64,000 nucleotides of DNA from the IMG/VR virus record IMGVR_UViG_3300010399_000031, positions 1-64,000 of that record. The stretch is one strand, 5' to 3'. Position numbers and translations under genes: made by a program. Numbering within the stretch: the stretch's first letter is position 1; every line of letters begins with the position of its first letter. This document shows positions 21,563 to 64,000 of the stretch, in pieces. The notes under the pieces are model-generated. The model did not search any database and was not told the DNA's origin. It saw only the letters and a list, made by a program, of their open reading frames with translations.

Positions 21563-23194
21563 ATGAGCGCGAAACTCGATATCCCGTTCAATTTGACACT
21601 CTTGCAACTGACTCCGGCTAAGCTGCACCTGATGCGGCCGGTGAAAGTGCTTGACAGTTTCGATGGTACGGGCAGCAATTTTCATCCCGATGGGTTGTTC
21701 AGTACCGAGATTTTTGGCCGGGTCGGAGACGAGCTGCGTTCGCGCCGCTTTTCCTACATCGACATCAAGATCTCGATTTTCCACCCGATCATTTATCGCG
21801 CACTGGCGGATTTGAAACAGCTGTACATGGGCATTATCGCTGGCACTGAATATGCCGTGTTCGATGATGAGGAAAAGGACTTCGCTCGGTCGGACTCAGT
21901 GCATGGGAAAACGGGGTTTCAGTTCTTTGTCTCCAACTGGAAACGTATCGAGTGGAAGGACACCAAATCGGTATCACGTGAACACAACATCAAGCTTATT
22001 CAGATGTATCAGGATAAGTGCATGATTGACCATGTGGTGGTCTTGCCCGCTGGTTTGCGCGATATGGAGATTTTGGCAGACGGTCGCCCGCAGGAAGACG
22101 AAGTCAATTCGCTCTATCGGCGACTACTGATGGTGGCCAATACGATCAGCGACGCTTCGATTGCGCATAACCCTGAGGTGATCAACAATACGCGCTTCAC
22201 ACTTCAAAAGAGCTTCAATCAGATTTACTCGACCTACGAGGAGATGATTGCGGGTCGCCGTAAGTTGATTCAAAACCGTTGGGTCTCGCGCCGTATCTTT
22301 AACGGCACGCGAAATGTGATTACCGCAGCGGACACGGCAGTTGCGTACCTAGGTGCACCAGGTGGTATGAGTATCAACGATACGGGTGTTGGCTTGTATC
22401 AGACACTTAAGATGCTGCTACCGGTATCGAAGTATTTGCTGCGCACAAGCTTTCTATCCACGGTTTTTGTAGCAGCCGATCAACCGGCGCAATTGGTGAA
22501 CAAAAAGACTCTCAAAGCTGAACCGGTAACCCTCAAACCGACAATGTACGATCGCTGGATGACCGATGAAGGGCTTGAAAAAGTCATCGCAGCTTTTGCC
22601 CATGAGGACAATCGCCACAAACACTTGGAGTTAGAGAACCACTATCTGGGTCTGATTTACAAGGGACCCGATGGCACATTTCGTTTGATGCACGATATCG
22701 ATGAAGTGCCGCAAGGGCGCGAGAAGAAAGACGTTCACCCCCTCACCTTTTGTGAGTTGCTGTACTGCTCAACGTATTTTGCGCTCAATAAATATCCAGT
22801 CTTTGTGACGCGTTACCCGGTCACAGGAATTGGCTCGATCTATCCGTCGATGGTTTTCTGTCAGACGACGATCAAATACGAAAAGCGCCACGAGTTATCC
22901 CTCAACTGGGATCCGATGGGTGAGGAGCGTACCGCTTATCAATTTCCCATCACAGGAAGCGCATTTGTCAACACATTGATTCCTCATCCAGCTAAACTCG
23001 TGGGTCTGGGTGCTGACTTTGATGGAGATACGTGTTCAGGTAACTCGATCTACACGAAAGAAGCGGTCGATGAAGTACATCGCTTTTTACAGACCGTGCG
23101 CGCTTATGTCAACACCAATGGCGAGTTTATGGCCTCCACCTCTACCGATACGGTAGAACTCGTCTTGCACAATTTCACTGGGGTTAAAGAATGA
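21563..23194 (+). CDS. virion RNA polymerase beta' subunit (phiKZ gp180-like)
   Basis: GLFSTEIFG, RYP and the catalytic GADFDGD motif. Confidence 0.95.
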   Translation: MSAKLDIPFNLTLLQLTPAKLHLMRPVKVLDSFDGTGSNFHPDGLFSTEIFGRVGDELRSRRFSYIDIKISIFHPIIYRALADLKQLYMGIIAGTEYAVFDDEEKDFARSDSVHGKTGFQFFVSNWKRIEWKDTKSVSREHNIKLIQMYQDKCMIDHVVVLPAGLRDMEILADGRPQEDEVNSLYRRLLMVANTISDASIAHNPEVINNTRFTLQKSFNQIYSTYEEMIAGRRKLIQNRWVSRRIFNGTRNVITAADTAVAYLGAPGGMSINDTGVGLYQTLKMLLPVSKYLLRTSFLSTVFVAADQPAQLVNKKTLKAEPVTLKPTMYDRWMTDEGLEKVIAAFAHEDNRHKHLELENHYLGLIYKGPDGTFRLMHDIDEVPQGREKKDVHPLTFCELLYCSTYFALNKYPVFVTRYPVTGIGSIYPSMVFCQTTIKYEKRHELSLNWDPMGEERTAYQFPITGSAFVNTLIPHPAKLVGLGADFDGDTCSGNSIYTKEAVDEVHRFLQTVRAYVNTNGEFMASTSTDTVELVLHNFTGVKE

Positions 23195-26100
23195 TTTATT
23201 ACGACCTCTTTTTCCGTAAGTTCGGCATTCGACGTGTCGATAAGTTGCTCTCTCCGCCGCTGGCCGCGACGCGTCTGATGGAGTTACCGCTGCTTTCGAT
23301 CTACCACTATCTGGGATCGAACACCGGGGTCGATGTGGCGCCTTCCTCGAACGAATACCTCTTTCGCAACATCACGCGCTCGATCGCCATTCAACACATC
23401 ACGGAGCCAGGGGCCCGTCTTGGCTTGCCGCAAAAGCACGTGGTGAGTTGGCCCCAGGTCATTCGTCACTACCAGTCGCGCAATCGTCGTTTTCAACAAA
23501 TCAGTAAGCTCGCGCAGTATGAAAACACACCGATGACATTGGTGGTGCAAAACTACGGATTTATTCCGTTGGGGTTAAAGTACCAGCGTAACGTGCTCAG
23601 TGCGTATTACCAATGGCATAATCAGCAAGCGGCATTGTGGGATCGAGTAGCAATGTTAGCTGGTGAGAGTGTGCGTAATCAGTTTGTTAAGTTTAACTTA
23701 CCGACAACATTGCCGTCGGTGGGCGACTTGCAACAAGCACAAGCGAAGATGAATGCCACCACCATTCATCATGTCTACGAACCCGATGCTTTTGTGATCT
23801 TGGAGCTGTGGAAGTGGTTGGGCGATTACCGCTCTGAGTCGCTGCTTGCACGAGTGCCGGAAGACAAACTCTCGAAAGTGAACATCATCTTCGAGGAGTC
23901 AGGCCGCTGGTTGATGCTTAACCTGGGTTTGCTCAATAGCTGGCGCAACACCCCGAAGGTGGAGTTGACCAAACTGGCTGAAGGACAAAACCCGAACCAC
24001 TCGGGTATCGATTCGCACCAGTTGCAACGTCGTTTTCTTGGGATGCTGATGCGGCTTTTCCAAGCGCGTTCGGTTTCGAATAAGGATCTCGGAGAAGACG
24101 TCGTCAATGAGGATAGCGACGGAAAAAAATCCGACGGTAGTGAAGAAGCTACACTGACCGCTCCGGTGTCTTCGCTACCAAAGGTCAACCCGGTAACCGG
24201 CAGCACAAGCACGGCGTTGGTCGACACGCAAGTGCGCACCAACCCGCTCGACATTCTCAACCCGAATCGGGATGAGCAGCAAACGCAGACACAGCTGCAT
24301 TTGAGCGTTGAGCAAGAGCGTCAACTCGAAGCGGATCTGTTGGAGCTGGATCGTATCAGTAAGGCGGTGATTCAGCGGCGCAAAGAGATGATGGAGTTCA
24401 TGGTCGAAAACGACGAAGAACCCCTATCTGCCACGCAAGGGATGCGTTTGGGTCAGACGCAAGTATCAAACCCGATACAAGCGCCGCGTAAGCTACCCGA
24501 GCTTAAACCAATCGATCCGAAACCAGAGGTAAGTGCAACCACCCATGATTACACCTCAGGGGTGCAAAAGCTTATCGATCGGCACGCTGAGCAAGGTATG
24601 CTCTCGGCTGCTGAAGTGCGGCGTTATCAGGAATTGGCACGCAAGCATGAATCGATCACGGCGCCCGATGGTAAGGGTAGCATGAAAGATTTCGTGGTGG
24701 TGCACCCGGAGGCGGTGAAGGTAGAGGCGAAAACCATCCCGGATAAGCCGTCGATTTTCGACAAGAGCATGCTTGCCTCGACGCTACACGAGTTCACCCC
24801 GAAGTATGTGGAAAACGTGTTGCAAAAAGACGTCGCGGCGATGGTGCTGAAGATTCAAGATGCTGGCTACTGCGTGACCGATTACGAAGTCGAACATGTG
24901 GAACAGATCACGGGTGATTACGACATGTACACCTGTCGCGTGACGCCGGTGGAGGGTTCCGCATCCACACTGCGCTGGAAACTGCCGTCGGTGCGAGCCG
25001 ATGGTGTGTTTGTTGCCAATAACGTACCTTACCGGATGCGCACGCAACGCGGGGACTTGCCGATTCGAAAGATCGAAACTTCCCGCGTGGGTCTGACCTC
25101 TTACTACGGGAAAGTGTTTGTCACCCGTAGTGAAAAGAAGGTGAACGACTACGGTGACTGGCTAAGGCGTAACATCATGGCGGCTGGCTTGGACCTGGAT
25201 AACCCGCACGTCAGTGCACTTCACCCAGCTAACGTGTTTGATCATCTCTTTCAAGCACCGCGCCTTTACAGCATCTGTGCCATGGGTTTTCGCGGCTTTA
25301 CGGTGAAACCTGGTGCTTGGCCTGAGAAGGTGAAGTTCAGTAGCCTGGAGTTTAACTTTGACCACACCAAGCGTGAGCAGCTTTACGGTAAAGACGTATT
25401 AGCGCGGGTGGAAAAAGAAGGGGCGTTGATGGTGGGAACCACCGATAAGCGCGATCCGATGATCATGACCGCCGATGGTGGGATCTCGGTGATCGCCGAT
25501 GGTAAGATGATCAATCTCGCCTCGTTCGATGAGTTGTGCGGTTTTGATCCGATGAAAGCGCCGGTCGATTTTGCGGTGGTCTCGGTCTTCGGTCAGAACA
25601 TCCCGCTGGGTGTGGTGCTTGCCTACGAGATGGGACTCTCGTCTTTGCTCAAACACCTTGGGGTAGAACCCAGACGTGTTCCGGCAGGTAAGCGGGTAGG
25701 ATTAACCGGTGAAGAGTACTCGATCGCGTTTGCCGATGAGACGCTTGTGTTTCGCAAGAAAGACAAGTTGCCTGCGATTATCTTGGCAGGCTTTAACGAG
25801 TACTGGAAAGCGGTCAAGCAGTATAGCGTCTACGAGTTCGATAAGCGTGGCGTGTACCTGAATGTGTTGGAAGCATCAGGCGTTGGTTCGCGTTACCTGC
25901 GAGAAATCGATTTACTCTATCAACTCTGGGTAGATCCGATTACCCGTGAGCTGTTGGTGGAGCTGCACGAACCCACTCAGTTCCAGGACATCTTGCTGCG
26001 TGCGGCGGAGTTACTCCTTACCGATACGCACCCGCGCACGCTTGACACCTCTTACCAACGTTTTAAGGGCTATGAGCGTTTTGCAGGGGCCGTTTATACG

Positions 26101-26520
26101 GAACTTGTCAACGCGATTCGTACGCACAATGGGCGTCCGGGTAAGAGCAAGCAGCCGCTCGATTTGAACCCGTTCGAAGTCTGGAAAGCGATCTCTGAAG
26201 ACCCATCGAAGTTGACGGTCAAGGATATCAACCCGATTGAGAACTTGAAACAACAGGAGTCTGTTACCTACTCAGGAACCGGTGGACGCAATTCACGGTC
26301 GATGACGAAAAACACCCGCGCGTACGATGAGAACGACATGGGGGTAATTTCTGAATCCACGGTGGACTCGTCCGATGTGGCGGTGAACACTTACATGAGT
26401 GCGAACCCGCAGTTTGTCTCTTTGCGTGGCTTGACCAAACGCTATGATCTGCACAAAACTGGCGCTACGTCTTTGCTCTCCACCTCGGCCTTGCTCTCCG
26501 TCGCCGCTGACAAAGATGAT
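23191..26520 (+). CDS. virion RNA polymerase beta subunit (gp178-like), exon 1
   Basis: 1110 codons ending ..AADKDD; joined to exon 2 it restores DDPKRVNF (RpoB HDDANRAL equivalent). Predicted spliced product 1494 aa. Confidence 0.9.
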
Positions 26521-27913
26521 TAAAGGAATGTTGTGAATAGCAATGAAATCTACTCTTCATCCTATGTTAATCGCTTTTGGGGTGAAGACGTATGGAAAAG
26601 ATCGAACCGGTTGAATCAATTGGTTTTCCAGGTTATTACGAAATTCCGGGGTTTAGTTTTCGATACGCAATTGATCGAGAAGGACGTGTAATTAACAAAT
26701 TGACTCGGAAAGTTCTTTCTGGAAGTGTCAATTCAAAAGGTTACTGCCATTATCGATTAATTGCTAACGATCTTCTGGTCTTAACGATCGGGAGACATAG
26801 GCTCCTGGCTTTCGTATTCAAACACCCTGGTGTTTCGTTAAAAGGTCTTGTGGTTAATCACCTGAACGGGATTCCAGGAGATGATCGTTTGAATAACTTG
26901 GAATGGACAACGCACAAAGGGAACATTGAACACGCAGGTATGTTGGGTCTTACGACCAAATGCATACCGGTATCTGTTCGAGACATCGATACGGGTGTCG
27001 TTATAAAGTTTCCGAGTATCGTTGAGTGTGCTCGTCATTTTGGGGTTACCAAAGATACGATCAATTGGCGTGTAAAAGTAGGTGAGGCGAAACTGTTTCC
27101 AGATCGGAAACAATATCGAACCACACGCGCTGATGATCCGTGGATTTCCCCCGGTAATATGGTGGATGAGAAAGTTGAGTTTGGAAGATCGAGATGCATC
27201 CTACTTCGGTACTTGGATAGCGAAACGGTTGTGGTGTTTCCTCAACTCCAACAATTGGCATCGCATCTCGGTGTCTCACCCGCAACCATCACACTCTGGC
27301 TTAACCAGCCCAATCAACCAGTACTCCCTGGTTGCATCCAGATAAAATTGGCAAGTGATCAGACTCCATGGAGAACGATTGCTGATCCTCGTCTGGAACT
27401 TGAAAACTATACGGGTAAAAAATCCGTCGTGGTGACCAAGACAGCAACCGGAGAATCTAAGATCTTTGATTCAGCTGTGGAATGTGCAAGAAGCATGGGA
27501 ATATTGCCAACCACCCTGAATCTCCGACTGAAATCGAAGGGAACAAAAACTTTCTCTGATGGTTTTAGTTATTGCTACTATTCAGATATTCCAAGGTCCT
27601 ACTCGACGGTAACGTTGAGATAGAATGCTCTCTAATTGCTGGAACCCCCTTAGAGCTGATTCACCAAAGCGAAGTGCGAAAGCACAGACGTTACGGTTGG
27701 AAAACGAATCAGATTGGGCAATCAGCAGCCAAGCCTCCCTGCGCAAGCGAGAGGAAGGTTCAACGACTAACCGCTTATCACGGTGTACCTGACCAAGTGG
27801 CAGGGAAATGGGAGCCGTCCTAAATGGACGAAGATATAGTCTGGACATTCAGGGAAATCCTGAAGCAGCACGTAATGGTGCGGCCTAGAATAACGACCTA
27901 GGTGAACATCTCG
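26521..27913 (+). mobile_element. group I intron (1393 nt) with homing endonuclease ORF
   Basis: P AATTGCTGGAA 27634-44, Q AATCAGCAGCC 27720-30, R GTTCAACGACTAA 27758-70, S AAGATATAGTCT 27831-42. P3 GCTCTC/GGGAGC, P7 GACTA/TAGTC. Exon 1 ends in T, intron ends in G. Confidence 0.92.
26592..27623 (+). CDS. intron-encoded HNH homing endonuclease (NUMOD4-HNH-NUMOD1 repeats, I-HmuI-like)
   Basis: HRLLAFVF..VVNHLNGIPGDDRLNNLEWTTHKGNIEHA; three repeats FPSIVECARHFGV, FPQLQQLASHLGV, FDSAVECARSMGI. Confidence 0.9.
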   Translation: MEKIEPVESIGFPGYYEIPGFSFRYAIDREGRVINKLTRKVLSGSVNSKGYCHYRLIANDLLVLTIGRHRLLAFVFKHPGVSLKGLVVNHLNGIPGDDRLNNLEWTTHKGNIEHAGMLGLTTKCIPVSVRDIDTGVVIKFPSIVECARHFGVTKDTINWRVKVGEAKLFPDRKQYRTTRADDPWISPGNMVDEKVEFGRSRCILLRYLDSETVVVFPQLQQLASHLGVSPATITLWLNQPNQPVLPGCIQIKLASDQTPWRTIADPRLELENYTGKKSVVVTKTATGESKIFDSAVECARSMGILPTTLNLRLKSKGTKTFSDGFSYCYYSDIPRSYSTVTLR

Positions 27914-29068
27914 CCCAAGCGTGTCAACTTCATCGCCATCCAGCACGGACACGGCGTTGCCTGTGCCGGCTACCACGCCAGCGCCGTTCGCACAGGCTAT
28001 GAGCAAGTCATTGCGCATCGCACAAGCGACCTCTATGCAACGACGGCGAAAAAACCTGGTAAGGTGATTTCACTCGATGAGCGGGGGATGATTGTCGAGT
28101 ACGATGACGGCAGCAAACAAGGCATTGAGTTGGGGCGACGCTTTGGTACGGCAGAAGGCTCAACCATCCCGCACGATGTGCGCGCTGCGGTTAAACCTGG
28201 GGCGAAGTTTAAAGTCGGGGATGTACTCGCTTACAACGAGGGGTTCTTTGAACCTGACTTTATCGACCCTTCTCAGGTGGTATGGAAGCCCGGTGTCACG
28301 GTCAAAGTGGCGCTCATGGAGAGCCCTCTGACGCTGGAGGACTCTTCCGCCATTAGTGCTCCGACAGCTAACCTTTTACGCACCAAAACGACTAAAGAAC
28401 GCGAGATTATCGTGAACTTTAAGCAGACGGTGCGGGAGATGGTGAAGGTCGGTCAAGCGGTCTCGTCCGAGGATATTTTATGCGTGATCGAAGACGAAAC
28501 CACGGCACGCAACGAACTCTTTGACAAAGAGTCGCTGGACACGCTACGCGTGCTTTCAGCGCAAACGCCTCAAGCCAAAGTCAATGGCATCGTGGAGCGC
28601 ATCGAGGTGTACTATCACGGTGAAAAAGAGGATATGTCGGATTCGTTGCGGCTACTGGCCAATGCATCAGATCGGGAGTTTGCAGCGCGTCACCGCTCAG
28701 TAGGACGCACGGTGATGACAGGTCAGGCGGGCGACAGCTACCGCAGCGATGGCGATCCGCTGCTACTGGACACTCTTGCAATCAAGATTTACATCACTGC
28801 CGAGGTCCCGGCCGGGGTGGGTGATAAGGGGGTGTTTGGTAACCAGATGAAGACGGTGTTCGGAACAGTGTTGGAGCACGAGGTGACGACCGAGTCGGGT
28901 GAGAAAATCGGTGCGATCTTTGGCGCGAAGAGTATTCAAGCGCGGATCGTACACTCTCCTGATCAGATCGGAACTACGACGACCAATCTGAACCTATTGG
29001 CCGCGCGCGTGGTGCGAACCTATCACCGACAGCCGCAACCTGCGCCGCTTAAGTCGCATAAAGACTGA
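27914..29068 (+). CDS. virion RNA polymerase beta subunit (gp178-like), exon 2
   Basis: Starts PKRVNFIAIQH; contains LEDSSAIS and GVGDKGVFGNQMKTV (RpoB GDKMAGRHGNKGV equivalent). Confidence 0.9.
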   Translation, partial: PKRVNFIAIQHGHGVACAGYHASAVRTGYEQVIAHRTSDLYATTAKKPGKVISLDERGMIVEYDDGSKQGIELGRRFGTAEGSTIPHDVRAAVKPGAKFKVGDVLAYNEGFFEPDFIDPSQVVWKPGVTVKVALMESPLTLEDSSAISAPTANLLRTKTTKEREIIVNFKQTVREMVKVGQAVSSEDILCVIEDETTARNELFDKESLDTLRVLSAQTPQAKVNGIVERIEVYYHGEKEDMSDSLRLLANASDREFAARHRSVGRTVMTGQAGDSYRSDGDPLLLDTLAIKIYITAEVPAGVGDKGVFGNQMKTVFGTVLEHEVTTESGEKIGAIFGAKSIQARIVHSPDQIGTTTTNLNLLAARVVRTYHRQPQPAPLKSHKD

Positions 29069-32407: not shown

Positions 32408-33160
32408 ATGTCTGTTAATAGCGTGCGTTACTCTTGTACGTCCTTGCAAGGGACGAACAAGGCCGGGTTGCTCAAACCCGATGCCAACGGTTACCGACCG
32501 ATGGTGGTCGGGGCGTTGAATATGTTCAACTCAGCTGGTGAGTTTTACGACTACGAGCGAGCCAAAAGCTTGTTCGAAGGATCGAGCCAATTGCAGCGTC
32601 GCGTTCAGCGTGGAGTGCTGAAAGGCGAATACGGGCATCCAAAGTTCGAAGTTGGGATGCGGCCCGACCAATTTGCTCACCGAGTACTCACCATCGATGA
32701 GCGAAACATTTGCTGTCACTTTCGTGAGTTGTGGTTGGATTTTAACAACTTGAAGGACAAAGACGGCAAAGCAGTCGTGGGGATCATGGCCTGGGTCAAA
32801 CCGTCGGGGCCGTTTGGCGGGTATCTGAAGGACTCGCTGGAAAACCCTGACGAGAACGTGTGTTTTTCAATTCGTGCGTTCACCGACGATAAGTACGTTG
32901 CAGGGGTAAAGCAGCGTTACCTGAAGACGGTGGTCACGTTCGACTATGTCCTGGAGCCGGGCATGGCGGTGGCTGAGAAGTATAAGGCTCCGGCACTCGA
33001 ATCGTACGACGAGCAGATCATCACACGTGGTTCATTGGAGCTGGCGATGAAAGCCACGGCAGACGTCGCTATGGAATCGGCTTCGCTTGCAAGTGATCTC
33101 TTTCAAGTCATGGGGTGGCACCTGCCGAAAGGGATCACACCCATCTTCACCCGCTGGTAA
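32408..33160 (+). CDS. head maturation protease (phiKZ gp175-like)
   Basis: LKGEYGHP (His), CFSIRA (Ser), VTFDYVLEPG motifs of the T4 gp21/phiKZ gp175 family. Confidence 0.88.
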   Translation: MSVNSVRYSCTSLQGTNKAGLLKPDANGYRPMVVGALNMFNSAGEFYDYERAKSLFEGSSQLQRRVQRGVLKGEYGHPKFEVGMRPDQFAHRVLTIDERNICCHFRELWLDFNNLKDKDGKAVVGIMAWVKPSGPFGGYLKDSLENPDENVCFSIRAFTDDKYVAGVKQRYLKTVVTFDYVLEPGMAVAEKYKAPALESYDEQIITRGSLELAMKATADVAMESASLASDLFQVMGWHLPKGITPIFTRW

Positions 33161-60051: not shown

Positions 60052-60699
60052 ATGAACCGTGTCTTCCGTATGGCCTTGGAGAATTTGTCTCCAGACATGA
60101 AGTTGTACCATTACGCAGCTCAAAAACACGAGGTGTTAAAAACCGTTGAAGTTCGCAGCAAGATTTCCAAGACTAAGCAAGCCGATGCGTTTGAGGACAT
60201 GAAGATCCACAAAGATCCTGGTACGTATCTCCAGCATATCTCGTTTTTCCTTGAATCGGTTCCCCTGGATGTAGTGGGTCGTGTCTTCGGAAAAGATCAT
60301 CCGTTCTGGTATCCCGGACACGATATTTTCGAACACGTGGTCAGTCTTGATCGCATGTCGGATTTTAAGTACCGAATTGTTGAGTCCCCGCTGGCGAATA
60401 AGATGTTCTACGATACGGATTGGGATGAACTCGACGACAACGACAAGTTGGTGTTTTTCCGCAAACTCGCCGAAGCGCAGAAAGCTGCCGGGGAAATCGG
60501 TAAAGGAGCCAGCCAATTCCATAACGCAGCTATTAAACTAATTGGTTCGACTCGGCGCGCATTTGAGGAGCTACCCAAACAACCTAATTGGGATGAGATC
60601 AAAAAACAGTATGCTGCGACCGTTCCGCATGTGATGTTGTATCCAGAAGGCGGTGAAGTAAAAGTCGATGAAATTCATGAAGTGAAAATCCCGCACTAG
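60052..60699 (+). CDS. putative head protein
   Basis: Start MNRVFRMALE (ALE maturation motif); HISFFLE and YAATVPH blocks. Confidence 0.6.
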   Translation: MNRVFRMALENLSPDMKLYHYAAQKHEVLKTVEVRSKISKTKQADAFEDMKIHKDPGTYLQHISFFLESVPLDVVGRVFGKDHPFWYPGHDIFEHVVSLDRMSDFKYRIVESPLANKMFYDTDWDELDDNDKLVFFRKLAEAQKAAGEIGKGASQFHNAAIKLIGSTRRAFEELPKQPNWDEIKKQYAATVPHVMLYPEGGEVKVDEIHEVKIPH

Positions 60700-60757
60700 G
60701 TTTTTAGTGGGCGATCTCCTTCCTATGTGAAGATCTGCTAACAAGGAGTTTAAAGAA

Positions 60758-61759
60758 ATGACTCAGGAACTGAATACCCGTGGCAAAGTGCGCATCTACG
60801 CCTGCGGCGGCTGCGGCGTGAACATCGGTTCGATGTTGGAAAAATGGCGACCCGATCCTTCGCCGACGATTGCTCAACTAGACATCGCCTACATCGACAC
60901 CTCGCGCTCGAACCTCAAACACGTGAACGCGCCGGCCGATCGCATCTACCTGTTCGAAGGTTTGGACGGCTCGGGTCAGATTCGCAAGGAAAACGTCAAG
61001 GACATCTCGGTGAAAGTGGCCGACATTCTGGACACGTTCGAACCGCAAGACCTCGCGATCGTGCTGCACTCGGCCTGTGGCGGTTCGGGTTCAGTCATCG
61101 GCCCCTCGATCGTCTCGGCACTGCTCGAAGCGAAGAAAGCCGTGATCGTGCTCATGGTCGGTTCAGCCGACACGCGACTCGATGCGCTGAACACGATGAA
61201 TACCCTGAAATCGTACGACTCGATCGCCAAGATGCGGGGTCTACCGGTGGTGCTCTCGTACCAGCAAAACAGTCGTGAAAACAAACGCGAAGCGGTCGAC
61301 GAACAGATGGTTGGCACTGCCGTGTCGCTCGCGATTCTGTGGTCGGCGAACAATCGGGAACTGGATTCGAAGGATCTGTACAACTTCCTGAACTTCCACA
61401 TCCCGACCACGTTCGAGGCGCAGGTGGCACACCTCACCTTGCTGCAACCGGACGACACGCTCAGCGAAGACGTCGGTCAAGTCATCTCCGTGGCAACCCT
61501 CGCAAAACGTGGGCAAGACACGGCGCTCGACCCGGCCCCTGAAGTGCAGTATCGCGGCTTTCTCGCCGACGACGCCCCCGATCGACTGCTGGCGGCCATG
61601 CCGACGCATTTCTTCGTGACCGACGGCATCCTCGACGAAGTGAACATGATGCTCAAAACCACCCTCAAGCAACACGAGGTCCAACAACAATCGAGGACAA
61701 CCAAGGAGGGATTCCTCACCGATGCTGACAAGCCTACGCATTCTGGCTTGGTTCTTTAA
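60758..61759 (+). CDS. phuZ: PhuZ phage tubulin
   Basis: ACGGCGVNIG, IDTS, GSG and SACGGSGSVIG tubulin/FtsZ signatures; ELDSKD T7-like loop. Confidence 0.93.
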   Translation: MTQELNTRGKVRIYACGGCGVNIGSMLEKWRPDPSPTIAQLDIAYIDTSRSNLKHVNAPADRIYLFEGLDGSGQIRKENVKDISVKVADILDTFEPQDLAIVLHSACGGSGSVIGPSIVSALLEAKKAVIVLMVGSADTRLDALNTMNTLKSYDSIAKMRGLPVVLSYQQNSRENKREAVDEQMVGTAVSLAILWSANNRELDSKDLYNFLNFHIPTTFEAQVAHLTLLQPDDTLSEDVGQVISVATLAKRGQDTALDPAPEVQYRGFLADDAPDRLLAAMPTHFFVTDGILDEVNMMLKTTLKQHEVQQQSRTTKEGFLTDADKPTHSGLVL

Positions 61760-61774
61760 ACAGACCAAGTTCAG

Positions 61775-62221
61775 TTGGCTGGTTCATCAGTTAGCATGGG
61801 TTAAACGAGTCCGTCAGGTGTGGCCAAGAGCGGTCTTGGCTACGCTATTTAAAGTGACCGCTAGACAACGCCGAAGGCGCCTACCGCGCATTAAGAGGAT
61901 GCGTATGGACACGCCTTTTGCGCAAGTCTTGGGGATTGCTAAATCCTGACGGAATTCGCCCCCTGGACTAACTACCCTGATCCAGTCGATCTTTCGTTAA
62001 AACTTGTCAAAATCTGTCAAGTTGGGCATAGCACATGAGAGAGTTGAAGACGCACTCGATACCAAGAGATCATCGGGGTTTGATCACCCTGACTTGATCG
62101 TATGAGTGGTAAATACGTCTACACCATGTCGCACGATACGCCCTGAGGGGCCGCCTTGAGAGCTAACCCGAACTCCCGCCCTAAGGGGCGCATCGGTGCG
62201 TAGTCGGCGGGCCCCTCACCA
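61775..62221 (+). ncRNA. candidate structured non-coding RNA (three domains)
   Basis: Nested long-range helices with G-U pairs consistent with the + strand; see findings. Confidence 0.5.
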
Positions 62222-62242
62222 CCACCCTTTTGGAGGAACCTG

Positions 62243-62344
62243 ATGTTTAGGAGACTAAGAGAATGGTGGGAGTTTTGGATGGATTTTCGAGCTTTCATGA
62301 AAGAACTTAAAGAAGTCAAGAACTCAACCACACTATCCAAATAG
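62243..62344 (+). CDS. 33-aa peptide, not in ORF track
   Basis: GGAGGA RBS; MFRRLREWWEFWMDFRAFMKELKEVKNSTTLSK*; stop overlaps the RBS of the next gene. Confidence 0.6.
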   Translation: MFRRLREWWEFWMDFRAFMKELKEVKNSTTLSK

Positions 62345-62353
62345 GAGACCAAC

Positions 62354-62599
62354 ATGTTTGGCCGGTTCTTTAACTGGCTCTTCAGAAAAGAAATTGCAGC
62401 TACGAAAAACGTATTTAGCGATGCGTCGTGTTCGTACTGTGAAAGTCGAGGTTTTTACCAGTACTCGATCGATGAAGTAGCCGTCTACAGTTGCACCCAC
62501 TGCCGCAACGCTTTCACGTTGCCGCGCAACATCTGTACGCTAAGTGATGCAGATCAGGCATTGCCCGAGAAACAGAACACACCCCTTGGCGCGCTTTAG
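62354..62599 (+). CDS. small zinc-ribbon protein
   Basis: AGGAG RBS; CSYC..CTHC. Confidence 0.7.
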   Translation: MFGRFFNWLFRKEIAATKNVFSDASCSYCESRGFYQYSIDEVAVYSCTHCRNAFTLPRNICTLSDADQALPEKQNTPLGAL

Positions 62600-62605
62600 C
62601 GCGAT

Positions 62606-62664
62606 TGAGTCAGTTTTGCTATCTGTCTTCTATCCAGGAGGCGATAGCAAAACTGACTTATGCC
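62606..62664 (+). terminator. long hairpin + TATGCC
   Basis: TGAGTCAGTTTTGCTATC/GATAGCAAAACTGACTTA stem plus inner stem. Confidence 0.65.
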
Positions 62665-62809
62665 GTTATACGGGATAGTCCTTGGAACAAAGTGAAAGAC
62701 AATTCAGCTTTAAACATAGCTCTAAAACGCACCAGAACGGGCGTAGAGCGGCTCCTTTATCCTTTTTTATACGCACCACGTATCTTGTGGTACAAAGCCG
62801 GGAAAACCG

Positions 62810-63193
62810 ATGCCGAAATACAATGCGACACTCATCCAAGATGCTGGTGAGTTGATTGCGTATCTAGAACAACCACTGTGGGTAATTCTCATGAAGTATG
62901 ATCCGAGACATTACCTCAGTATAAAACACGTCTACGAGTGGTTAATCCGCGAGGAGATCGAAGTTGTCTACGGGCTATCGTGTATCGGACACAGACACCG
63001 ACTCGATCCTTACCGTAAGATACGGAACAAGCTTACCAGAGCCATACCAGTCCCGCTGGAGAAGTTAATTCCAGCCTACATCAAGGCCCCTCGAATTTAC
63101 GATAATCCATTTGTCCAAGTTGATCTGATGGAAGGCACCGACCTTTACATCCAGTACTTTCAACACGGGACTCAATCAGCACTGACTTTCTGA
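62810..63193 (+). CDS. hypothetical protein (phiKZ-like core neighbourhood)
   Basis: 127-aa ORF at the head of an operon. Confidence 0.7.
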   Translation: MPKYNATLIQDAGELIAYLEQPLWVILMKYDPRHYLSIKHVYEWLIREEIEVVYGLSCIGHRHRLDPYRKIRNKLTRAIPVPLEKLIPAYIKAPRIYDNPFVQVDLMEGTDLYIQYFQHGTQSALTF

Positions 63194-63200
63194 AGAAAAA

Positions 63201-63923
63201 ATGGACCTTGCGCTTTTGGAAGCACTCACCGCTGAAGAGCATAGCGGTCGAAGACTTTATCTGGATATTCTTGAAGTTGCGTCACGACTGGAGCGCAACT
63301 ACGGTCATTACTTCAAACCCTATTTAGGAGAGCAGCTGTATTTTGATGGCGTAAGTCGCCCGATCCTGGATTTCGAAAAGAACACCTATCACTCGATGGT
63401 GGAGAAAGATCCACTAAGACCGGGTGAACTCGTGAGTGTGTCGATCCGCGACGCCAATGCGCTGCGTGAGGCGGATGTGTACGATCAACACGAGCGGCTG
63501 GTGGTGCGGGGTAAAGATGTGGTCAAATTGCGGGTGCAGCCAAGTGATCCTGTGCGCATGATGGATTTCATCGTGGAGTACGTCTCGGACTACTGCCACT
63601 CACGCATTCCCGCATTTGAAAAGAAAGGGCGAGGTCTTAATGAGATCTTCGAAAGTTTTCTCTCACCCGAGATGCTCGATGACTTTGAGGTCTTAAAGAA
63701 AAAGGACCCCAATGATGCGGAATACTTTGTCTCAGAAATCTTCTACTTGATCGATCCCTTGTTAGCCGAAGTGCGCGAATTCATGGGGCCGAACAAGTGG
63801 ATGATTTTCCTGGTCAGGCGCCAAGCGTTTGATTTGGTGCTCGACGCCTATCTAGACTACCGCATCTACGTCTATCATGAGCGACTCAAGCAAGAGCAGG
63901 ACGATACCTCATGCGAGTCGTAA
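63201..63923 (+). CDS. hypothetical protein (phiKZ-like core neighbourhood)
   Basis: 240 aa, ends in a DYRI-containing block. Confidence 0.75.
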   Translation: MDLALLEALTAEEHSGRRLYLDILEVASRLERNYGHYFKPYLGEQLYFDGVSRPILDFEKNTYHSMVEKDPLRPGELVSVSIRDANALREADVYDQHERLVVRGKDVVKLRVQPSDPVRMMDFIVEYVSDYCHSRIPAFEKKGRGLNEIFESFLSPEMLDDFEVLKKKDPNDAEYFVSEIFYLIDPLLAEVREFMGPNKWMIFLVRRQAFDLVLDAYLDYRIYVYHERLKQEQDDTSCES

Positions 63924-64000
63924 ATCAAGTATTTGTCATCTCGCTACAAGAGCCGGCGCTACTGGTCAAAGACTACATGCGCAAGTTCTACAGTCAGAGT
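63911..64000 (+). CDS. next gene, 3' truncated by window
   Basis: ATG 63911 overlaps the previous gene, AGGA RBS, frame open to window end (MRVVNQVFVISLQEP...). Confidence 0.55.
   Translation, partial: MRVVNQVFVISLQEPALLVKDYMRKFYSQS

Follow-up and report, generated by a model that had tools for sequence, protein, structure and literature searches.

A large structured RNA downstream of the tubulin gene in phiKZ-like jumbo phages

We found that a tRNA-sized hairpin located downstream of the phage tubulin gene phuZ is the 3'-terminal domain, the last ~20%, of a structured RNA of about 475 nt that a group of giant (jumbo) phages keeps directly after phuZ, and to which no function has been assigned. 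The analysis was carried out on a stretch of 64,000 nt (positions 1 to 64,000 of the 243-kb contig IMGVR_UViG_3300010399_000031), hereafter called the window. At least 14 divergent lineages, with PhuZ proteins 51-94% identical to that of the window, keep the RNA in the same place, and its helices are maintained by compensatory changes. The features of the locus are collected in Table 1.

Table 1. Coordinates of the tubulin gene, the structured RNA and neighboring features in the window.
Position	Strand	Feature	Details
27556-27865		Group I intron	The only true Rfam hit in the window
60758-61759	+	phuZ, phage tubulin gene	phrog_4733 "tubulin PhuZ", 2.7e-81; Pfam Tubulin, 3.2e-07; immediately upstream of the RNA in every lineage
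61722-61949		75-aa ORF	Protein-coding reading rejected
61757-62232	+	Whole conserved structured RNA, about 475 nt	From the phuZ stop codon to the end of the G-free tail
61811-61952	+	5' domain	Long-range helix H1 (61811-18 with 61945-52), hairpin H2 (61819-29/61834-44) and hairpin H4 (61884-61908, loop UAAGAGG at 61892-98)
61926-61968	+	Pseudoknot	Strand M (61926-34) with strand D (61960-68), crossing the 3' strand of H1; M is also complementary to strand U (about 61850-66)
62001-62023	+	Hairpin H6	Conserved loop GUCA..CUGUC; followed by the conserved GGGCAUAGC (62024-32)
62048-62120	+	Helix H7	62048-62 with 62100-20; conserved asymmetric internal loop; encloses a variable hairpin
62130-62144	+	Joining strand CGCACGAUACGCCCU	Nearly invariant in 13 lineages; 5' arm of the proposed crossing pairing
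62145-62217	+	Terminal rod-like hairpin	Pa 62145-55/62206-17 (bulged G62210), internal loop UUGAGA, Pa2 62162-65/62201-04, Pb 62168-71/62193-96, Pc 62177-81/62186-90 (loop UAAG)
62218-62231	+	Single-stranded, G-free, C/A/U-rich tail	Begins with ACCA (62218-21)
62232-62236		RBS of the 33-aa ORF	GGAGG
62243-62599	+	Variable cargo, not part of the RNA family	33-aa Trp/Phe-rich ORF (62243-62344, ATG at 62243) and 81-aa Cys-rich ORF (62354-62599)
62608-62665	+	Terminator-like hairpin, probable end of the transcription unit	16-bp perfect hairpin (62608-23 with 62643-58) followed by TATGCCG

To confirm the element, we first examined the sequence directly. All of the features described in the original prediction are present. 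GAGGGGC (62145-51) pairs perfectly with GCCCCTC (62211-17), the stem is extended by CGCC (62152-55) with GGCG (62206-09), ACCA follows the stem, the inner hairpin CGCCC-TAAG-GGGCG is present, and there is no TTCGA-type T-loop. In addition, GCACGATACGCCC (62131-43) is complementary to GGGCGCATCGGTGC (62186-99), giving 12 pairs with one bulge and one mismatch. As had been anticipated, ARAGORN called no tRNA, and likewise no tmRNA, anywhere in the window. The 77-nt piece (62145-62221) folds at -39.1 kcal/mol (z = -2.4, with 4 of 200 shuffles as good), so that on its own it is only mildly unusual; what puts it beyond chance is its conservation in relatives. Motif searches found a single copy in the window, and a search for a second copy elsewhere in the window gave only a noise hit at 32798-32876 (E 0.2-0.6).

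The window carries split multisubunit RNA polymerase beta-type genes, a tail sheath gene and a terminase gene in addition to phuZ, and it therefore belongs to a phiKZ-like jumbo phage. BLAST of the region, and of 9 kb around it, against 50,697 phage records found no DNA match to any GenBank phage, and the nearest cultured PhuZ, that of Burkholderia phage FLC9, is 42% identical. Exact-motif scans of IMG/VR recovered only the window's own contig and two relatives. In two IMG/VR contigs (L003 and L002, with 72% identical PhuZ), the entire ~470 nt after the phuZ stop is conserved at the nucleotide level, and not just the hairpin. We therefore gathered further relatives through PhuZ homologues and their contigs; a metagenome scan with a PhuZ alignment added almost nothing for the close clade, and for one homologue (P0004) no DNA was recovered. 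This gave 14 distinct lineages, which we denote by L-numbers: the window, L007, L122, L003, L009, L120, L010, L012, L014, L015, L121, L016, L017 and L123. All have the same gene order, with a DUF7484 gene, phuZ, a gap of 450-650 nt and a gene of 127-130 aa. The gaps align from the phuZ stop to just past the hairpin, and the RNA was alignable across 13 lineages in a single alignment.

To determine whether the gap is maintained as RNA, we examined the 5' domain with a covariance model (R1). Sequences not used for training scored 121, 92, 68 and 62 bits. In the R1 alignment, 92% of cells were paired and 21 of 26 pairs were changed on both sides, which 0 of 500 shuffles reached, and sliding the partners reduced pairing to 30-44%. 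The alignment is fitted to the model and leans towards its own structure, and alignments in the variable parts are imperfect; neither a full-length covariance model nor R-scape was used, the joining strand was not compared with all other columns, and the close-clade phuZ-downstream regions in Logan and SRA assemblies, of which dozens exist, were not all harvested. However, helix H1 was also predicted independently by RNAalifold, with AU-to-GC exchanges in four lineages. In the middle part, H6 was 99% paired with four pairs changed on both sides, and H7 was 75-83% paired, also with four such pairs, although H7 aligned less well in L010, L012, L014 and L015. The M-D pseudoknot formed duplexes of 9-11 bp with different sequences in 9 of 12 lineages. 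Cognate M-D duplexes were more stable than non-cognate ones (-15.6 versus -11.4 kcal/mol), as were U-M duplexes (-12.9 versus -9.3 kcal/mol), and the U-M and M-D helices are mutually exclusive. The whole 476-nt sequence folded at -181.3 kcal/mol (z = -5.7, 0 of 100 shuffles as good), and this single-sequence fold reproduced the comparative helices. The signal is specific to the + strand: G-U pairs are frequent, and reverse-strand hits reached only 9-11 bits against 127-130 bits on the + strand. Stops occur in all frames, and divergence in the 75-aa ORF was equal at the three codon positions (0.52/0.46/0.47 at positions 1/2/3). Overall, the region satisfies the criteria for a structured non-coding RNA, namely helices kept by compensatory changes, strand specificity and no coding signal.

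We next analyzed the terminal hairpin in 13 sequences. It is a single unbranched, irregular hairpin, in which helix Pa has 11 bp and a conserved bulged purine on its 3' strand, followed by the invariant 6-nt loop UUGAGA, Pa2 (GCUA/UAGU), Pb (CCGA/UCGG, which becomes CUGG/CCAG or CUGGAU/AUUCAG in L121 and L017) and Pc (CGYCC/GGGCG). In this alignment 82.7% of cells were paired, 14 of 24 pairs were changed on both sides, 0 of 500 shuffles reached this, and slid controls gave 40-51%. The single-sequence minimum free energy structure gave the same fold, and a model of this domain (R2) found the unseen L123 at 63 bits. In L015 the whole interior is replaced by a plain hairpin. On the other hand, the crossing pairing showed 0 compensatory pairs and was no better than shuffles (347 of 500 as good); the complementarity is conserved only because both strands are nearly invariant, and its 5' arm is kept even in L015, which lacks the proposed partner. 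The crossing pairing is thus not supported, but it is not disproved either. We also tested pairing of the 3' tail with the interior of the hairpin. It was not significant (z from -1.1 to +1.6) except in L012, where ACCAUUA in the tail matches UAAUGGU in the changed Pc loop (z = -2.1), which is a lead only.

The four bases after Pa vary by lineage. They are ACCA in the window, L007, L122, L010, L012 and L016, CCCC in L014, TTCA in L015 and L121, AATT in L017, TTCC or CCCT-type in the L003/L009/L120 clade, and TCAC in L123. In a more distant clade (PhuZ about 47%), the closing stem has a completely different sequence and is followed by ACCA in L029 and L037 and by ACCC in L027. ACCA therefore follows the stem in 8 of 17 lineages. 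On the PhuZ tree, the ACCA lineages surround the others, so ACCA is probably ancestral and was replaced about four times by other G-free tails. Across the lineages of the 13-lineage alignment the tail is G-free for about 9-11 nt, whereas in FLC9-type relatives the terminator-like hairpin follows with no single-stranded tail. These observations leave undecided whether NCCA counts as a conserved feature directly after the terminal helix. ACCA appears to be under some constraint but dispensable, which fits a preferred start of a single-stranded tail better than an obligatory tRNA end, though it does not exclude a tRNA-end-like role.

The sequence downstream of the RNA differs between lineages. 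In L009, L010, L017, L120 and L121 the tail runs straight into a long hairpin followed by (A)UUUAUGCC; in relatives without cargo the sequence following this hairpin reads (A)TTTATGCC(G), and in FLC9-type phages the hairpin carries a run of seven U. Between the tail and this hairpin, the 33-aa ORF is conserved at the amino-acid level in L007 and L122, the 81-aa ORF has a homologue in L123, and an 80-aa ORF sits at the same place in L007. The slot holds tRNA-Thr plus tRNA-Ser in L003 and L002, and another ORF in L012. The hairpin is the likely end of the phuZ transcription unit, which is an inference.

To examine how far the RNA extends, we searched the PhuZ 42-47% clades with R1 with filters off. 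The nine best hits in nine loci all lay just downstream of phuZ on the + strand; the match was full-length in L026, L027, L029 and L037, whereas in L018 (FLC9), L032, L035, L036 and L039 only the H4 hairpin matched. These phages have gaps of 580-850 nt at this position. R2 did not detect these clades, and the similarity of their closing stems was seen by eye only. Other PhuZ phages, such as RSL2 and RTH11, have short gaps and gave no hit. Related contigs occur in assemblies labelled Sulfuriferula, Caballeronia arationis and Paraburkholderia, and FLC9 infects Burkholderia glumae, which points to betaproteobacterial hosts.

The RNA matched no known family. We searched all 4227 Rfam 15 families at the gathering threshold on the window, at E<=10 on 61700-62700 and at E<=1 on five relatives including FLC9, and found nothing at the RNA, including for GOLLD, ROOL, RNase P, group I/II introns, OLE, HEARO and raiA. 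There was no tRNA, tmRNA or tRNA-like hit, although both Rfam and ARAGORN found the true tRNAs of L003. Resemblances to RNase P RNA conserved regions, SRP RNA and the two halves of the 11-nt tetraloop receptor (UAUGG ... CCUAAG) were considered, but none was supported by Rfam, and the two receptor halves are not in one helix. Literature searches on jumbo phage non-coding RNAs, on GOLLD and ROOL, and on FLC9, which did not extend to subscription-only literature, returned no description of this RNA, and a 2026 jumbo-phage review mentions only unspecified phiKZ non-coding RNAs.

The interpretation that accompanied the original prediction is partly supported by these results. It was correct that the element is a conserved, functional RNA structure rather than chance. 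The condition set in advance for rejecting it was the absence of an RNA end at the CCA together with a lack of conservation of the 7-bp stem plus NCCA in relatives; the stem is conserved with covariation, while NCCA is kept in only 8 of 17 lineages. However, the element is not tRNA-shaped, the crossing pairing gained no support, it is not a dedicated translational switch for the 33-aa ORF because most lineages with the RNA lack that ORF, and the larger RNA had been missed.

The comparative data establish that 62145-62221 is the last domain of a multi-domain, pseudoknotted RNA lying between the phuZ stop codon and a conserved terminator-like hairpin, that divergent lineages keep this RNA at the same place with its helices maintained by compensatory substitutions, and that the proposed acceptor stem is helix Pa, closing one irregular hairpin. 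What we infer beyond this is that the RNA is made as the 3' part of the phuZ transcription unit, since no recognizable promoter or terminator lies between them, and that it acts as an autonomously folded non-coding RNA, either a protein-binding scaffold or a catalytic RNA, rather than as a leader for the variable downstream genes. There are no expression data, so that transcript ends, co-transcription with phuZ and stability are all inferred; the promoter scan does not cover promoters of the phage's own polymerases, and in L015 and L016 the hairpin just after the phuZ stop is followed by U-rich sequence, so phuZ might terminate there in some lineages. In this view, the GC-rich terminal helix with its conserved purine bulge, plus the G-free tail, would be the 3'-end module: a stable helix would stop 3'-to-5' exonucleases or define the processing site, so that a discrete stable RNA would accumulate whatever cargo follows, and ACCA would be an ancestral but dispensable beginning of the tail. 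The size, the pseudoknot, the invariant unpaired strands (for example CGCACGAYACGCC and UUGAGA) and two Shine-Dalgarno-like loops (UAAGAGG, UAAGGGG; in relatives the first reads AAGGAGG or AUGGAGG) argue for a scaffold or catalytic RNA rather than a simple stabilizer. We are highly confident that the hairpin is a domain of a new large structured RNA and not a tRNA mimic, whereas the 3'-end-module mechanism, which is an argument from anatomy only, is tentative; for the statement as a whole our confidence is moderate.

Two alternative explanations are unlikely but deserve weight. In one, which was the main idea of the original prediction, Pa plus ACCA works as a tRNA-like minihelix recognized by RNase P (cutting before G62145), by the CCA-adding enzyme or by a synthetase, and either releases a 77-nt RNA or matures the upstream RNA, as RNase P does at the mascRNA of MALAT1. 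An 11-bp GC-rich helix does carry U at -1, G at +1 and a 3' ACCA, and real tRNA-Thr and tRNA-Ser genes were inserted a few bases downstream in L003 and L002. ACCA persists across long branches and reappears after an unrelated closing stem in L029 and L037, which is more than a featureless spacer would predict; moreover, many tRNA genes do not encode CCA, so its loss is not decisive. However, there is no cloverleaf, covariation supports one rod without D, anticodon or T arm, and no T-loop (UUCRANY) exists in 62145-62217. The helix is interrupted on its 3' strand by the bulge at G62210, the opposite of the acceptor/T-stem stack of a tRNA, and ACCA was replaced by CCCC, TTCA, TTCC, CCCT, AATT or TCAC in 9 lineages. 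The strand just 5' of the putative cleavage site is among the most conserved parts of the RNA, which argues for one continuous functional molecule. The 3' end of the RNA and its behavior as a substrate for these enzymes were not measured here. The other alternative, considered slightly less unlikely, is that the region is purely a cis-acting 3' UTR that controls stability, translation or localization of the tubulin message. In agreement with this, it always lies directly downstream of phuZ on the same strand, starts at the stop codon and is followed by the terminator-like hairpin, and no data separate this reading from the one we favor. Against it, about 475 nt with roughly 10 covarying helices, a pseudoknot and several invariant unpaired strands is far more elaborate than known bacterial or phage 3'-end stabilizers, and many other PhuZ-encoding phages, for example RSL2 and RTH11, have only short gaps here.

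The remaining readings are very unlikely. A leader or translational switch for the 33-aa ORF is suggested by the end of the element 10 nt before the GGAGG and by the presence of mutually exclusive pairings, though these lie elsewhere, between U, M and D. However, that ORF exists only in the window, L007 and L122, the riboswitch-like requirement of a constant downstream gene fails, and neither alternative pairing involves the RBS. An intrinsic terminator of phuZ is suggested by the GC-rich stem and a TTTT run 10 nt after it in the window, but the stem encloses a 50-nt structured interior, the tail is C/A-rich, the T run is not conserved, and a terminator scan found no + strand site in 60500-64000, while a separate conserved hairpin with a U-rich tail lies further downstream. 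Finally, the region might not act as RNA at all, but as a protein-coding region or as a DNA-level site such as an origin or a centromere-like site for PhuZ. Gene callers place 66-77-aa ORFs here in four lineages, and their translations share short motifs. These motifs are simply the conserved helix strands, there is no excess of third-position change, the other nine lineages examined have no called ORF here, every + frame is interrupted by stops, and compensatory changes with frequent G-U pairs are strand-specific signatures of RNA.

Among known systems, the RNA works most like GOLLD and ROOL, large ornate RNAs of phages and prophages of unknown function that form RNA-only cages (bioRxiv 10.1101/2024.12.08.627333). 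It resembles them in its length of several hundred nucleotides, its many covarying helices with a pseudoknot and invariant unpaired strands, its phage origin, its non-coding nature, its unknown function and, in the L002/L003 sub-lineage, its position next to tRNA genes. It differs in its helices and motifs, in its fixed position after phuZ in jumbo phages and in that tRNA adjacency is the exception; multimer formation was not examined. With tRNA and tRNA-like structures (the TYMV/BMV 3' TLS, mascRNA, tmRNA) it shares a helix followed by a single-stranded ACCA, an overall length of 77 nt and a position at the 3' end of a larger RNA, but it is a rod-like hairpin rather than an L-shape mimic, without a D-arm or pseudoknotted acceptor. 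It also has no tag reading frame, and its stem is local rather than formed from the RNA ends as in tmRNA. Like 3'-terminal stabilizer hairpins and processed 3'-UTR-derived small RNAs of bacteria and phages, it has a stable GC-rich helix at the end of a transcript segment that would block 3' exonucleases and define a discrete RNA end downstream of a coding gene; those are simple hairpins of 20-40 nt, whereas here the helix closes a conserved 50-nt interior with covarying sub-helices. The phage T4 stable RNAs C and D (species 1 and 2) are also phage-encoded stable RNAs of unknown function with tRNA-like ends, but they are much smaller, sit inside a tRNA operon and depend on RNase P processing; homology to them was neither tested nor seen.

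A further possibility, to which we give somewhat less than even chances, is that this is a previously undescribed class of large (0.45-0.7 kb) ornate RNA specific to PhuZ-encoding jumbo phages of Betaproteobacteria with its own biochemical activity. It would be a ribozyme, a ribosome- or protein-engaging scaffold (two hairpin loops display Shine-Dalgarno-like UAAGRGG) or a self-assembling RNA like ROOL and GOLLD, with a built-in conformational switch in which strand M pairs with either U or D, and a terminal domain that ends in a tRNA-like ACCA.

Large, intricately folded non-coding RNAs are rare, and those whose function was eventually worked out turned out to be ribozymes, ribonucleoprotein cores or self-assembling RNA cages. 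We found none described for the phiKZ-like jumbo phages, which build a nucleus-like compartment and a tubulin spindle. Although large phage RNAs of unknown function are known as a general kind, this family, its position and its architecture are not. The conservation of an RNA of about 475 nt next to the tubulin gene across phages whose tubulins are only about 50% identical, with more remote versions reaching a cultured Burkholderia phage (FLC9), gives a concrete, testable new component of jumbo-phage biology and a new target for RNA structure work.

In the region immediately downstream of phuZ, we found that a hairpin with a variable stem and the conserved loop UGGAAGUNCUGGG directly follows the phuZ stop codon, in the window as well as in its relatives. 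In two of these lineages, L015 and L016, the hairpin is followed by a U-rich stretch, which suggests that it might act either as a partial terminator or as the first helix of the RNA. Further into the RNA, strand M is complementary both to an upstream strand, U, and to a downstream strand, D. Both pairings follow the sequence changes between lineages: the energies of cognate versus non-cognate duplexes were −12.9 and −9.3 kcal/mol for U-M, and −15.6 and −11.4 kcal/mol for M-D. The two helices cannot coexist, and this finding suggests a built-in conformational switch or a folding intermediate. In addition, two hairpin loops display Shine-Dalgarno-like purine runs, UAAGAGG and UAAGGGG, respectively, and in the H4 loops of the distant relatives L027 and L029 the first of these reads AUGGAGG or AAGGAGG. 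The runs could reflect contact with the 3′ end of the 16S rRNA or simply tertiary contacts, neither of which was tested. In one lineage, L012, the loop of Pc, the innermost helix of the terminal hairpin, changed from UAAGGGG to UAAUGGU, while the tail reads ACCAUUA, a perfect 7-base complement. This hints at a loop-tail pseudoknot involving the ACCA, although other lineages do not support it.

Positions of the individual features in the window and in one relative
Feature	Sequence	Position
RNA polymerase beta-type gene (phrog_3148), whole split locus	window	23191-29068
RNA polymerase beta-type gene, first part	window	23191-26523
HNH endonuclease ORF (phrog_59)	window	26592-27623
Group I intron (Rfam RF00028)	window	27556-27865
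RNA polymerase beta-type gene, second part	window	27902-29068
Hairpin directly after the phuZ stop codon	window	61765-61800
Region containing strands U, M and D	window	61850-61968
Strand U	window	about 61850-66
Strand M	window	61926-34
Strand D	window	61960-68
Loop UAAGAGG	window	61892-61898
Loop UAAGGGG	window	62182-62188
33-aa ORF	window	62243-62344
81-aa ORF	window	62354-62599
16-bp hairpin with TATGCCG	window	62608-62665
Motif before the next gene	window	62775-62810
Pc loop and complementary tail	L012	5339-5435

Beyond the tail of the RNA lies a 16-bp perfect hairpin that is followed by TATGCCG in the window, by UUUAUGCC in relatives, and by a run of seven U in FLC9-type phages; equivalents are present in the lineages L009, L010, L017, L120, L121, L018, L032 and L035. 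This hairpin is probably the terminator of the phuZ unit, and the slot between it and the RNA tail is an insertion hot spot for small ORFs or tRNAs. In the window, this slot holds two ORFs. The 33-aa ORF, which is rich in Trp and Phe, is conserved at the amino-acid level in the relatives L007 and L122, with conservative replacements. The 81-aa ORF has four Cys residues in a zinc-ribbon-like arrangement and a homologue in L123, and an 80-aa ORF sits at the same place in L007. Both look like real small genes of unknown function. Further downstream, a conserved motif, TTGTRGTA(N)2-4AAGCCSGGA, lies just before the start codon of the next gene, and it is also found upstream of the 127-130-aa gene in L009, L010 and L012. 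We consider it a candidate promoter or 5′ UTR element for the phage's own polymerase.

Elsewhere in the window, a multisubunit RNA polymerase beta-type gene is split into two parts. The interruption is a group I intron, identified by its Rfam match at 70.5 bits, that carries an HNH endonuclease ORF, and it resembles the intron/endonuclease arrangement reported for other phiKZ-like phages. As to the hosts, related jumbo-phage contigs of 143-286 kb (L123, L124 and L125) sit in assemblies labelled Sulfuriferula sp. (a MAG), Caballeronia arationis LMG 29324 and Paraburkholderia sp. BCC1886. The two isolate assemblies may reflect carried (pseudolysogenic) phage, and these labels are host clues that point to Betaproteobacteria.
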